Below are positions 3,412 through 12,703 of a DNA stretch of 64,000 nt, one piece after another. The stretch is from Klebsormidium nitens (Eukaryota > Plantae > Klebsormidiophyceae). The first letter of the stretch is position 1. Each line of letters starts with the position of its first letter. The notes beneath the pieces are model-generated. The model was not told the DNA's origin, did no database searches, and worked only from the letters and a program-made list of their open reading frames with translations. The stretch covers positions 1 to 64,000 of the forward strand of contig DF237058.1 in NCBI GenBank assembly GCA_000708835.1. Reading direction: 5' to 3'. A program made the position numbers and the translations under genes.

Positions 3412-6400
3412 TCACGAGCTTGTCAGAGCCTTCACGTGGTGGGTGATGTGATCCGGCATGAAAGTCGCGATGGTATAGTAGCTGTGGTCGTATCCGTCCT
3501 GCATTCTCAACTTGACGCCGATGCCATTGCTTTTACAGGCCTCGGCAAACTCCTCAGGCAGCAGCTGCTTCTGGTGCAAAAAGTTGTCCTGTGAACCCTG
3601 CGCAAAACGCAAATGGAACGTTGCAGAACATGAGAAACCTCAAGAATACGACGACCTAAAGATGCTTGCCAAGAGCAAACTGTTCGAATACCACCGCAAA
3701 GAAGTCCTTGACAAATAGTCTGGAGGTGGGAAGGGCTGCTTTGGCTTCGAAGTGAAGAATGGGCGGATGTCGAAATAACGACATAAAACTGTCCTTGCGA
3801 AGACTTGTCCGGTTTTTAAAAGGCCATCATACTCTGGATGTGGACCAATTTCAAAGCTATTGCAGAAGCCGGGCACTCAGAATCTGCCTAAAGGGTCAAG
3901 GGGAAGTTTGAGCCAGTAGTCGAGGAGCTTTACTCTACGACCAGCTTCTTGACTGGGCGGGAAAACAACTTCATGACAGGAAATGACGACGGGACAGGGA
4001 GTCAAGCGACGACATTACCTGATCGATCAAGATATGGAAGTCCTTGTTGCCGCTGAACTTCTGCGCTAGCACGGTAGCGTCGTATTCCTGCAAACGCAAT
4101 TGATGAGTGAGCGTCGAATTTAGAAGACGCCAAAACCCGCAGACTGCACTGAACGCAATCATCTGAAGCATGCTGTCCAGATTTGGACGACCTCGAGACT
4201 TGGATTCGAGTAGAAATGGAAGTCTTCTGTTTTGAAAAGTTCTCCGGTTTCAGTCAAAAACAAAGTAAGATTTCCGATTGGCTCGGAATCTACAGCTCCA
4301 GCGACACAACGGCATTTCTGTCGGACCAATGCCTCCAGTGGACGAATGGTACTGCAATCAAAGGCTGGACCTTGTGACTACGACTCAACGGCAAAGCTGA
4401 CACGAGGCTTTAGCACTTTGCAGAACTCAAGCGTACCTCCCATTTTGACTTGTCCGACCCCAAATACCCTGTGAAGGCTTTGACGCCCCAGGGGCAGTTG
4501 CTGGGGTGGCAGATAGGGGCGAATGCGGACACCGTCTGCACAAAAGAATTCGACCGAAAATGATTGGAATTTCTGCCCCGAAAAAATAATTACTGTACTC
4601 CATGATGAGCGACAGGCGTACCCTGGGGCAGAACTCGACCTTGGCTGCGGCTTAGCCTTGCTTCGTGCAGATGAGCAGATGATGGCGTTGTTTGATCATC
4701 TCCCTCTGTTAGGTTGATTCGATCCGGATATGAAAGGCCGGGACCCCAGAAACAAACGCAACACCCACCTTGTACTTGTCACGGTTCTTGAGGAAGATGG
4801 TCAGCGCGCCGTGGCCGCCCATGGAGTGTCCGAAAATGGACGCGTTGCTGGTGTCCAGCTGAGGAAAGTGCGTCCGAAGAAGCTCGGGCAGCTCCTTGAC
4901 AACGTAGTCGTACATCCGCCATGCCTTCCACTTGTCCTCAGTAGCGTTCAGGTAGAAACCGGCACCTGAGATGAAGGGGAGTAGTTTGAGATTGATGGCC
5001 TTTCAAGCCGCGTTCCTGTGAAGCCAGTCGTTCATGGTGGTCTTCTGAAAAGAAGGATCGGAGAAACCGGGTGTCACTATTGTAGTGCTTTCTGGTGTTC
5101 TGTTGACAGCATCATGAGACAGCAACTCTGAAAGATAATCTGCGACACGAAGAATCGTGAATAAGCCTAGATCATCAACTACGAATTGATGTACGCTCTA
5201 CAAAAACGGAGCTTCATTTTTCAGAACATCACCATTGACTGAACAAGTTGCCACCTTTGAGCCAGTCGCTGTAGGCAGGTAACATTGACCATCAAGTTCT
5301 CTCAAATTTCACATTGGGAATGTCGGTGTTCAAAGACTATCCAGCGAAGGGGCCAAAACGGTGCTTAAGGTTCACCTTAACCTCTAACAGAGGTTTGGAA
5401 GAGAGTATCTTACAGGGCATTCTACAAAAATCTCAACCCCAATCACATGGATGACGAAAGAACGACGAGTAGGGCCAAGACTCACCGACTCCAAAGTCCC
5501 AGCTATCAGCCTCCCCCTCCACATTCAAGCCACCTGCAATTTCCAATCAATCAAATCATCGGCTGGCTTTCAAAAAGTCGCACCTGCTGATCAAATCTGG
5601 GAGCACTTTGAGTGATACCGCTGTGACACATGGCATCATTTTAAGCAACAGAATCAGCTGTCAATTTGGAACAAGAGAGTGGTGCGGCGTTACTCAAAGT
5701 CTGATCTAGCATCTTACGACTAGATATGCTCAGAAGATGTAACTTGATGCCATTGGGCTTCCTTACGTGGGGATGTATCGCAAGCCACGATGGCAACTCC
5801 TTTCTCAGCAGCATCGCGCTGGACGCCAGACTTCTGGATGACATTCTCGTCAGTGCATGTGAGCCCAGACAGCCAGTAGAGGACCTGGAAGCACAGAAGG
5901 GAATTCAGAGTAAGGCAAGGGTGTCAACTGGTCACTCATATTTCCTCGTCAGCGGAGCGAATGTGCTTCAGAGAATAATCTGCATCAGTGGCTCATGGAT
6001 TCTTAACCATTTTGGTGATTGAAAGCAAGTCAAGAAACATTTCCTCCCTCCCAGATTGTGGTACTGTTCAGGCGCTCACCGGTACTTTCCCCTTCTCTGC
6101 TGCCGGTGGAAAGTACACAGTGAACTTCATAGGCACTCCAATCGTACTGCTTTCATGCTCATATCTCTTATTGAAGCCGCCAAACTGCTTTGTTGAGCTG
6201 ATCTCCTTTGGGGCCGCCATTTGTGGTGGCTGATCAGTAGCAGCTGCCCTCGCAGAGAAGCCCCTTGGCTGTACCTCCCTGTTCAGTTGAGGCGTTATAA
6301 GTAAGGTGCTAAAAGGACTTTTCGGAACTTCAGCGATTCTTGGCCTGCTAAAAAAGAAATTTTTTGCTACATGCAGACTGCTTGAGCTCCTAGAAAACGC

Positions 6401-9900: not shown

Positions 9901-12703
9901 TTGTTTGCTATCGTGTGCAGTGCTGCGAAGGGGCTAAGAAGGCGGGGGCGAGCCGGGTCATTGGGATCGACATCGACATCAACAAGTTCAAGCGGGGTAA
10001 GGCCTCGGGAAACATTGGTTCTTTGTGCAGACATAGGCAGTTGCTTGTAGCACAAGCCAACATTATCTTTCCCGCATCATCATTTTGTCGTTGGGCTGAG
10101 CCCTTTCCGCGTCATCACGGTTTTGCTAGACCGCGAAACCTGCTGTCCTGCACGTGCTTGACTCGAACGCGATTGCGTTACCGATTCCCGGGATGACGTC
10201 TTTCTGGGAAGGAACGTCCTTCTTACTCGACAGTAACGAGGAAGCTTTGTTTTTCTCCCCAGCGACGGAGTTCGGCTGCACCGAGTTTATCAATCCCAAG
10301 GACTTCGACAAGCCGATCCAGGAGGTAAGTTCATCTCACCACGCGCAATGGAAGATTTAGACTAAGAGGTTTTTAGTGCCTACTAGCTTCAACCGGCAAA
10401 ATCACAGGAAGTCCCTCTCGTTCGTGCTCATCTAAGTAGAGCTACTGCTGAATTGCTGGCCTACGTCAGACTGCGTCGGACCTGTGCACCAAGATACAGC
10501 TCTTGTCACTGCTAAGCTTTTGCTCTGTTTGTGCCACCTCGAGGACAATCTTCCAAAGCTATCACGATTCCTTCCATGTGCGTTATTTTGGTTGTGATTG
10601 AGATGCGCTTTGGACATTGACCCCGCGGTTTGCAAAGTTCCGAGAAGGAAACGATGATCCTTGAACCCCAGACGACATCTCTTTACCAATGGTTGAAACC
10701 GTTTTTAAAGACAAAGAGCGGCGGTTGTTCTCGACACGCCTCGTTTTGCAGATGGCACAAAGTGGAACAATTGCGGTGTTCGGGAACGCTCTGACTGACT
10801 GCTTACGTGCAGGTGATTGCGGAGAAGACGGACGGCGGCGTTGACTACAGCTTCGAGTGCATTGGCAAGACTGACACCATGCGTGCCGCGCTCGAGTGTT
10901 GCCACAAAGTACGTACTTGCACTTTCTTTCTTTGCTCGCTGCTCTTCCGTAGTTGTTTTTGGTCGGCTGGATGACCATGGATATATCAACGGTGAACCGT
11001 CATACAGCAAGGAGATAGTGGACCCTCAGGGTTCTTGAAGCGGCTGTGGGCTCGTGAATCGCGTAAAGATGACGTCGTTTTGCGCGACAGTCGTTAAAAG
11101 CATAGTCGAAACTTTTGAGCGCATGCTATCTACTTGTAAATTTGTGGCTCAAATGAAACTCGGAAGGTTCAAGATTTGAACATCTTAAAGCTTGGTACCC
11201 TCACAGGCGGGTCGCAGAAGTGCACAGCTTCCAATATCCCTTCGCCGCTGTCCAATCTGCATGTAGCAATCTGAGTCTGCGAGGTTTAGCTACGGTCAGC
11301 CCACTCGTTCCAGAAAGTAGGCCAAAAGGAGCGGAACCCTTTACTGATAAGGATACCCTTTCTGAAGCCTCCATTTTTTGACGGCAAAAAGTTCCACAAT
11401 AACGCCACGATTCCATACTGTGTCCAGCTGTGTCCGTCTTTGGCGGTCTGCCTGTCTCAGGGTTGGTGCAAGTTGGACATGTCAGATGGATCCGACAACT
11501 GTTTCCCCTAAAATCAAACTGTCGCTCTCTTCGGACGCCCAATATCGTCAGGAGTATGCTCAACTCTCAAACCCCAAAATAATCCCATGACAGGGTTGGG
11601 GTACGTCAGTGATCATCGGGGTGGCGGGATCGGGTCAAGAAATTCGAACACGACCGTTCCAGTTGGTCACCGGACGGGTGTGGAAGGGGACCGCGTTTGG
11701 GGGGTTCAAGAGCCGGACGTCCGTACCGGACCTGGTCAAACTGTACATGAACAAGGTACCAATCAGACTACTGCTCATCCTGTTTTCGATCTGTTTGTCC
11801 ACAGCGGTCCTTTTCTTCTGTTCGACGCCTTGTCGCCGTAGCTATTCAACTCCGTGCACTGGGATTCAAGGATGAAGCTAAAGACAATGATTTACTTCTG
11901 GGAGTTTTGAAGGACCGGCCTCTGGTTCCTGCGGAGTTCCGTCCGTTTGTAAATCTGGTCTCGAGTCTGCTCGGCTCAGGAGAGCTTGTGGACACTAGCT
12001 AGCTATGCGGGCATTGATCCCGCCCTCAGATCGCCGTTGCGTGCAAGTAAAGGGCACCGTCGCAATGGGAACGCCCAGGAAAAAAAGCTTCTAGAGATCT
12101 CTCCGTTTTTGGACCACGTGGTCATGCAAATTCTTTCCAAACAGCGCGTGTGTGCCGCTCAGGGCCTCCCTTCCTTTCTTAAAGTGGGCGTTCTGTTCCG
12201 CGGAACGCCGGACGGCCGAGGTTAGCGGCAGGGGGTCTCACGCAAATTTGAGTGATAATCGCGAACGTCAAGTGCCGGGTTTCGAGCCGGTGACCAGCGC
12301 GGCGACGGCTGAAGTCCTGGCTCAAGTCCAACTACATTGGATCAGTCGCCGTGACATGACGTCAGTGCTGACACTTTGGAACGCCCACTTTATAAGCGGA
12401 CGTGGCCGAGAACCAGCGAAGGCTGCTCTTGCGACTTGAACTGAATGTGGGCTGACAATTTACGTATGCGGTTGTTTGAAGGAGTTCACGTAGTGGAGAG
12501 ATCTTCAAAAACCCGGCAAGTGACCTCTCGGGCGTGATATTTCAAGAGAATATTTATGTGGTAACAACTCCAAATGGACTGTGCAGGAGATCAAAGTGGA
12601 CGAATACGTCACGCATGAGCTGCCCCTCTCCGAGATCAACAAGGCCTTTGACTTGCTTTCTTCCGGAAACTGCCTGCGTTGCGTCATCCATATGCCCAAC
12701 TAG
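6927..12703 (+). CDS. GSNOR: Class III alcohol dehydrogenase / glutathione-dependent formaldehyde dehydrogenase / GSNO reductase with 88-aa N-terminal extension, 471 aa, 10 exons
   Basis: Exons 6927-7236, 7685-7921, 8271-8344, 8865-9063, 9491-9573, 9921-9996, 10263-10324, 10813-10908, 11594-11755, 12587-12703, all GT-AG and in phase. Motifs ALCHTD, GHEAAG, structural Zn C-x2-C-x2-C-x7-C, and GLGTVG. Class III substrate residues are present (GEDPEG Asp/Glu, NLCAKVR Arg, IYHFMG Tyr). The core starts at a second ATG (7191, [21 protein letters not shown]). Confidence 0.97.

Follow-up and report, generated by a model that had tools for sequence, protein, structure and literature searches.

Glutathione-dependent formaldehyde oxidation runs through two consecutive enzymes. 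Class III alcohol dehydrogenase (ADH3, also known as GSNOR, FALDH or S-(hydroxymethyl)glutathione dehydrogenase) oxidises S-hydroxymethylglutathione and reduces S-nitrosoglutathione (GSNO), while S-formylglutathione hydrolase (SFGH, of the esterase D family) hydrolyses S-formylglutathione to formate and glutathione. In bacteria both enzymes are encoded side by side in the frmRAB and adhC-fghA operons, where the genes are co-directional with ADH3 first, separated by a median gap of ~14 nt, transcribed as one mRNA and often accompanied by the FrmR repressor; the order in Escherichia coli is frmR-frmA-frmB (NC_000913). Ciliates and diatoms have coupled exactly these two enzymes independently, through reciprocal FALDH-SFGH and SFGH-FALDH fusions in which a single promoter gives rise to a single polypeptide (Stover et al. 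2005, Mol Biol Evol 22:1539, cited in PMC3143110). In model plants and algae the orthologous enzymes that are listed or have been cloned are short forms (SFGH of ~284-289 amino acids (aa), GSNOR of 378 aa) and their genes lie on different chromosomes: AT2G41530 (SFGH) and AT5G43940 in Arabidopsis, chromosome 6 as against chromosomes 2 and 14 in poplar (PMC8335594), and, in Chlamydomonas, CHLRE_03g158800 as against Cre12.g543400 and Cre12.g543350 (the latter two from PMC7744773). Here we describe a head-to-head pair of SFGH and ADH3 genes in the early-diverging streptophyte alga Klebsormidium nitens, located in a window of 64,000 nucleotides that begins at base 1 of scaffold DF237058.1 (assembly GCA_000708835.1). 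It is a real, expressed and lineage-specific pair of nuclear genes; our searches of the open-access literature retrieved no account of these genes lying head to head in a eukaryote.

Structure and origin of the SFGH-ADH3 pair

We used FrmA and FrmB of E. coli (from NC_000913) as guides, enumerated the GT-AG junctions and read the short exons directly. In tblastn searches of the window, FrmB residues 10-275 mapped piecewise to the minus strand, from 6184 to 3421, and FrmA residues 12-367 to the plus strand, from 7705 to 12688. Each gene gave a single colinear exon set, both genes are intact and every splice site is GT-AG. The SFGH coding region occupies 3412-6505 of the minus strand in seven exons (6505-6080, 5884-5767, 5533-5486, 4965-4769, 4535-4437, 4087-4019 and 3597-3412) and encodes a long form of 380 aa, with 48% identity to FrmB across 264 aa. 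The ADH3 coding region occupies 6927-12703 of the plus strand in ten exons (6927-7236, 7685-7921, 8271-8344, 8865-9063, 9491-9573, 9921-9996, 10263-10324, 10813-10908, 11594-11755 and 12587-12703) and encodes a long form of 471 aa, with 60% identity to FrmA across 364 aa. The first ATGs stand at 6505 (minus) and 6927 (plus) and the last bases of the stop codons at 3412 and 12703, so the divergent orientation, the outer bounds and the 421-bp spacer (6506-6926) of the original prediction were all recovered. This spacer comprises both 5' untranslated regions (UTRs) and the promoter region.

The predicted identities of both genes were borne out by Pfam, NCBIfam equivalog and PDB matches. In single-exon queries PF00756 (Esterase) was found on SFGH exons 4 and 7. 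TIGR02821 was the sole match for five SFGH exon pieces, which are colinear over model positions 3-275 and sum to ~276 bits against a cut-off of 281.7, two short exons being unscored. The SFGH exons also match solved SFGH/esterase D structures; the Ser-Asp-His triad is present in GHSMGG, IDQG and DHSY contexts, as is the conserved Cys in LSGLTC. ADH3 has the architecture of a medium-chain dehydrogenase, with PF08240 (ADH_N) on exon 2 (E 1e-12) and PF00107 (ADH_zinc_N) on exon 8. TIGR02818 was the top match for every ADH3 exon piece tested, colinear over 5-82, 108-172, 279-331 and 333-368; it was scored on single exons, to which the whole-protein cut-off was not applied. Numbered from the internal Met89, ADH3 carries Cys51, His73 (in GHE) and Cys181, together with cysteines 103, 106, 109 and 117 and, four residues past Cys117, Arg121. 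By human ADH5 numbering we take these to be, in turn, zinc ligands, the structural-zinc cysteines and the glutathione-binding Arg. From these family assignments, the K. nitens proteins would be expected to catalyse the two reactions established for their families.

The public annotation contains shorter versions of both genes. Residues 96-380 of our SFGH model are identical to the annotated K. nitens SFGH (P0237, 285 aa), whose gene spans 3412-6220 and starts at Met96, with its codon at 6220. The length of the annotated ADH, 389 aa, agrees with translation from Met83, and PF08240 and PF00107 are listed for this protein as well.

The locus differs in layout from both known ways of coupling these enzymes. 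Like the bacterial operons, it encodes the enzymes of consecutive steps side by side; unlike them, it has its genes on opposite strands, yields two separately spliced mRNAs, has no regulator gene nearby and is made of plant-type sequences. Unlike the fusions, it encodes two polypeptides, with separate start and stop codons, by divergent transcription, and therefore neither stoichiometry nor channelling is enforced. A 665-aa ADH3-SFGH fusion protein (P0153) was present among our protein-library matches. The fusions, like the bacterial adjacency, stand as the original prediction had described them.

In a maximum-likelihood tree, built for SFGH only, the K. nitens protein falls within the Viridiplantae and apart from FrmB; its core is 68% identical to the SFGH of Chara. 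The best PDB matches of ADH3 are to plant class-3 ADH, with 131 bits as compared to 94 bits for class P. Both proteins are ordinary members of their families, and both genes have a vertical, plant-type origin. With SFGH placed within the Viridiplantae and away from FrmB, the pair was assembled from resident plant-type genes and did not arrive as an operon. Of the phylogenies that had been proposed to separate vertical from horizontal origin, the SFGH tree thus gave a placement, while for ADH3 the origin is read from the structure match.

The possibility that a bacterial frmAB or adhC-fghA operon was transferred and later inverted was considered in this light. Its only support is that the same two genes adjoin in bacteria, which our metagenome loci illustrate: a scan with SFGH exon 4 returned mostly bacterial operons, which we used as a control, and among the intronless loci ADH3 immediately preceded a co-directional SFGH in 43 of 78, with a median gap of ~14 nt. 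Among the 44 linked, prokaryote-like loci, however, 43 were co-directional and one divergent, as opposed to the divergent arrangement in K. nitens. Furthermore, the K. nitens genes contain six (SFGH) and nine (ADH3) spliceosomal introns, and their identity to the E. coli proteins is just 48% and 60%. We rejected such a transfer on the grounds of introns, tree position and orientation, and its probability is close to nil.

The sole divergent case among the linked prokaryote-like loci was the intronless L079, in which ADH3 (3-161, minus) and SFGH (503-1321, plus) are ~340 bp apart.

Transcription of both genes

The locus was present in at least seven public studies, and we placed contigs of four RNA runs from four studies on 3300-9299. 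These runs represent RNA, because the contigs are spliced and there is almost no depth in introns. All six SFGH introns were seen as exact joints in the contigs, as were ADH3 introns 1-3, and a loose end at 9064 continues into the start of exon 5, across intron 4. The SFGH contigs end at 6583, 6578, 6527 and 6436 (the outermost, 6583, in runs X11 and X7) and the ADH3 contigs start at 6879, 6889, 6971 and 6976 (the outermost, 6879, in run X1). The N-terminal extension of SFGH is contained within mRNA, as is that of ADH3 in runs X1 and X11. Given these spliced contigs and their extents, both genes are expressed and both upstream ATGs are inside mRNA.

Contig ends are lower bounds of transcript extent, not mapped start sites, and therefore the true gap between the transcripts is at most 295 bp. 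This corresponds to 6584-6878, the longest stretch without an mRNA contig and the candidate shared or adjacent core promoter; in the four runs no RNA contig spans it. The 5' UTRs measure at least 48 and 78 nt by the contig ends. With outermost ends at 6583 and 6879, the genes are head-to-head with transcript ends less than 1 kb apart, as in eukaryotic bidirectional pairs. The depths of the two genes were similar in order in all four runs (501/505, 331/280, 160/193 and 120/60), depth being a poor measure of expression.

The pair in relatives and in other lineages

A search with SFGH exon 1 led to four open reading frames (ORFs), of 50-68% identity, on contigs L002, L003, L004 and L005 (Logan, JGI, ENA), and all four have an ADH3 a short distance upstream of SFGH and on the other strand. 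In the core, their SFGH and ADH3 proteins share 88-97% identity with the K. nitens proteins, which, along with collinear flanks, suggests that these contigs belong in or near Klebsormidium. Divergence from K. nitens at 4-fold sites is 0.35-0.5 for L002 and L004, 0.5-0.8 for L005 and 1.0-1.2 for L003, and the ATG-to-ATG spacers of the relatives measure 204, 214, 218 and 379 bp. The pair thus originated either inside the Klebsormidium lineage or at its base, and at least five taxa have inherited it.

Outside this group, we took named orthologues from a representative-library search with exon 4 and a word search; Chlorokybus, Mesostigma, Coleochaete and Zygnematophyceae were left out of the survey. 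By annotation and tblastn, the SFGH loci of Chara braunii, Physcomitrium patens, Coccomyxa subellipsoidea and Riccia fluitans have no ADH3 in the 10 kb to either side. A metagenome scan by exon-1 alignment found nothing, and the exon-4 scan added two plant-like contigs without ADH3 to the bacterial operons. The plant-like metagenome contigs L007/L008 and L015 likewise have no ADH3 within 10 kb of SFGH. Nor was there one on L016, of which only 2.8 kb upstream of the match were covered, and in L006 the 5' SFGH exons were not found, so these two contigs say little. In the microsynteny comparison proposed with the original prediction, linkage is thus present beyond K. nitens, in the four relatives, but within 10 kb does not extend to Chara, Physcomitrium, Riccia or Coccomyxa. 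Its statement that the two genes are unlinked in model land plants agrees with their separate chromosomes in Arabidopsis and poplar and with the absence of ADH3 within 10 kb of SFGH in Physcomitrium.

A head-to-head pair ancestral to streptophytes or to all green plants, and lost repeatedly since, is very improbable given these data: linkage within 10 kb is missing from all four genomes sampled outside Klebsormidium and from L007/L008 and L015, and the genes are on different chromosomes in three model species. What could be said for such an ancient linkage is that SFGH proteins with presequence-like extensions occur in other green lineages (see below), so that some features of the locus are old.

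Some differences in gene structure were observed along the way. K. nitens, L002 and L004 share ADH3 intron 2 (7922-8270 in K. nitens, 349 bp), which L003 (51-374) and L005 (857-1153) lack, with residues 104-211 lying there in a single tblastn match; this is a presence/absence difference among close relatives. In Chara braunii SFGH is one uninterrupted ORF of 285 codons (L010 10001-10858, BFEA01000172.1), unlike the SFGH genes of K. nitens, Physcomitrium and Riccia, which have 5-6 introns. Riccia fluitans (L013, CM092409.1) carries two tandem SFGH copies, at 3212-4755 and 10001-13714, ~5 kb apart.

Sequence elements of the spacer

Two telo-boxes had been described between the ATGs, and exact copies of AAACCCTAA are indeed located at 6609-6617 and 6844-6852 of the plus strand. 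The first lies 26 bp beyond the outermost SFGH contig end and aligns with AAACCCTAAAAGC in L002 and with a degenerate ACACCCTAAAAGC in L004. The second, contained within GAAACCCTAAAAGCAG, lies 27 bp beyond the outermost ADH3 contig end; it is kept in L002, L004 and L005 and absent in L003. The window holds four copies of AAACCCTAA while 0.37 are expected, and none of 100 shuffles reached four. Between the two telo-boxes of K. nitens, a stretch of ~210 bp (6620-6835) is missing from L002, L004 and L005 and explains the longer K. nitens spacer; blastn revealed no second copy of it in the window.

Further conserved elements lie closer to the genes. The only spacer block that is invariant in all five taxa, CTGCCAGCTCAC (6901-6912, plus), is located in the ADH3 5' UTR, is single-copy in the window and is contained within the contigs starting at 6879 and 6889. 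On the same side of the spacer, GAAACCCTAAAAGC is retained in three of the four relatives. Within the SFGH 5' UTR, the alignment outlined an upstream reading frame of seven codons, MASEGAF followed by a stop (6530-6553, minus), the ATG of which lies in the block GCCATGCAAA(A)TGC, kept in four of the five taxa. Where the spacer can be aligned, the identity of K. nitens to L002 and L004 is 0.63-0.65, compared to 0.46-0.55 for the introns.

The locus resembles eukaryotic bidirectional pairs not just in having 5' ends less than 1 kb apart, but also in its short conserved proximal elements and in the presence of the telo-box AAACCCTAA near transcript starts. It is unlike most such pairs in that its members encode enzymes of successive steps in the same pathway. 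As for telo-boxes, they are best known at translation-related genes, not at detoxification genes.

The other two telo-boxes of the window, at 47693-47701 and 47721-47729, form a same-strand pair (minus) 28 bp apart; paired telo-boxes may be a recurrent promoter feature of the K. nitens genome.

N-terminal extensions

Contrary to the short forms of the model species, both K. nitens mRNAs contain an upstream in-frame ATG. Relative to the annotated proteins, these ATGs would add 95 residues to SFGH and 82-88 to ADH3. The SFGH extension (6221-6505, minus; 95 codons) and the ADH3 extension (6927-7190, plus; 88 codons) are both in frame and presequence-like, with 4% acidic residues and a net charge of +8 in the former and 3% and +7 in the latter. 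Both are open, in frame and of like length in all four relatives. Their identity to the K. nitens extensions is 32-84%, compared to 88-97% for the cores, and thus they evolve much faster. Extensions that evolve fast but remain open and in frame fit a coding, presequence-like region rather than a UTR. These features suggest that the annotated SFGH and ADH3 models probably lack their true 5' ends, or that the long forms are alternative isoforms.

At the nucleotide level, the ADH3 extension differs from L002 and L004 at 0.12 of its 4-fold sites (~41 sites, a small number) as compared to 0.30-0.36 in the core, while its protein identity to the same contigs, 81-84%, is lower than that of the core (90-96%). 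This low 4-fold divergence may reflect nucleotide-level constraint beside the promoter.

SFGH proteins with presequence-like extensions of 29-90 residues also occur in Physcomitrium (isoform X1, as opposed to X2), in Selaginella and in several green-algal transcripts (P0203/P0211, P0176, P0185, P0172, P0174 and P0028). To judge from these sequences, many plants and algae other than angiosperms may have an organellar isoform of SFGH.

Discussion

Our results outline a divergent pair of plant-type genes for two consecutive enzymes, both transcribed and inherited together throughout the Klebsormidium group. We consider it reasonably probable, though well short of certain, that promoter-proximal control is common to SFGH and ADH3 and that the two are co-expressed. 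A common chromatin environment and common proximal elements would most likely give both steps a similar constitutive expression, and the presequence-like extensions, each followed by an internal Met, may send both proteins to one organelle in addition to the cytosol. In its fullest form this idea describes a third independent ADH3-SFGH coupling, that is, a module maintained by selection, with one bidirectional telo-box promoter and matched presequences, serving a cytosolic and an organellar pathway; we put it forward tentatively, as a reading that is at present rather unlikely. That the linkage itself is maintained by selection is doubtful to a similar degree. A functional module is what would be suggested by the repeated joining of this pair, the short spacers of the relatives, the conserved proximal elements and the matching presequences. 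That these two enzymes have been coupled repeatedly is commonly interpreted as a result of selection, either for equal dosage or because the reactive thioester intermediate needs to be removed rapidly.

Several observations weigh against this interpretation. The telo-boxes of K. nitens are 235 bp apart, and each is beside one gene; placed in this manner, ~26 bp outside one mRNA each, they are as compatible with two adjacent core promoters as with a single shared one. The ~210 bp of additional sequence between them are tolerated in K. nitens. The contig data show neither the real 5' ends nor the expression levels of the two genes. The flanks are collinear too, in L002 (window 529-16453) and in L003, and therefore the retention of the pair shows inheritance that is indistinguishable from background synteny. 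The annotated neighbours on either side are a CHCH-domain gene and an F420_oxidored-type gene, and the four annotated genes alternate strictly in orientation around the pair. Alternating pairs seem to make up much of this genome, which would raise the frequency of head-to-head neighbours by chance. Lastly, the pair is absent from every lineage tested outside the Klebsormidium group.

These same observations favour an explanation by chance, in which an ancestral Klebsormidium rearrangement happened to bring the genes together head to head, in a compact genome made up mostly of divergent pairs. The two would then each have a telo-box core promoter of their own, any likeness in expression would reflect only that both are housekeeping genes, and slow rearrangement of the genome would keep them adjacent. 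Congruently with this explanation, the flanks have remained collinear up to a silent divergence of ~1.1, orientation alternates around the pair, one telo-box stands beside each gene with ~210 bp inserted between them in K. nitens without apparent harm, and there is no linkage in Chara, Physcomitrium, Riccia, Coccomyxa, Arabidopsis, poplar or Chlamydomonas. On the other hand, immediate adjacency of two given single-copy genes would be expected in ~1 in 8,000 cases, on the assumption of ~16,000 genes in K. nitens. Moreover, the same pair has been physically coupled at least three other times (the operons and two fusions), and what is retained of the spacer is better conserved than the introns. 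Spacers of 204-218 bp between ATGs in three relatives would leave room for hardly more than one promoter, and it is hard to accommodate two promoters and two 5' UTRs in them. Taken together, we consider chance neighbours, the scenario that the original prediction named as its own refutation, a possible explanation, though not the likelier one.

If the genes are chance neighbours only, the locus amounts to an ordinary annotation note. In practical terms, the public annotation appears to drop ~90 codons from the 5' end of SFGH and of ADH3. Should the long forms be produced, formaldehyde and GSNO metabolism in this alga would have a subcellular location that differs from the cytosolic picture derived from angiosperms. 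The pair also bears on whether the divergent pairs of the compact K. nitens genome are functionally sorted. K. nitens is culturable and is covered by many public RNA-seq series, which makes the idea of co-regulation testable in this alga. Should that idea prove true, the operon and fusion solutions for coupling these two enzymes would be joined by one at the level of chromatin, represented by a head-to-head pair in a streptophyte of early divergence.

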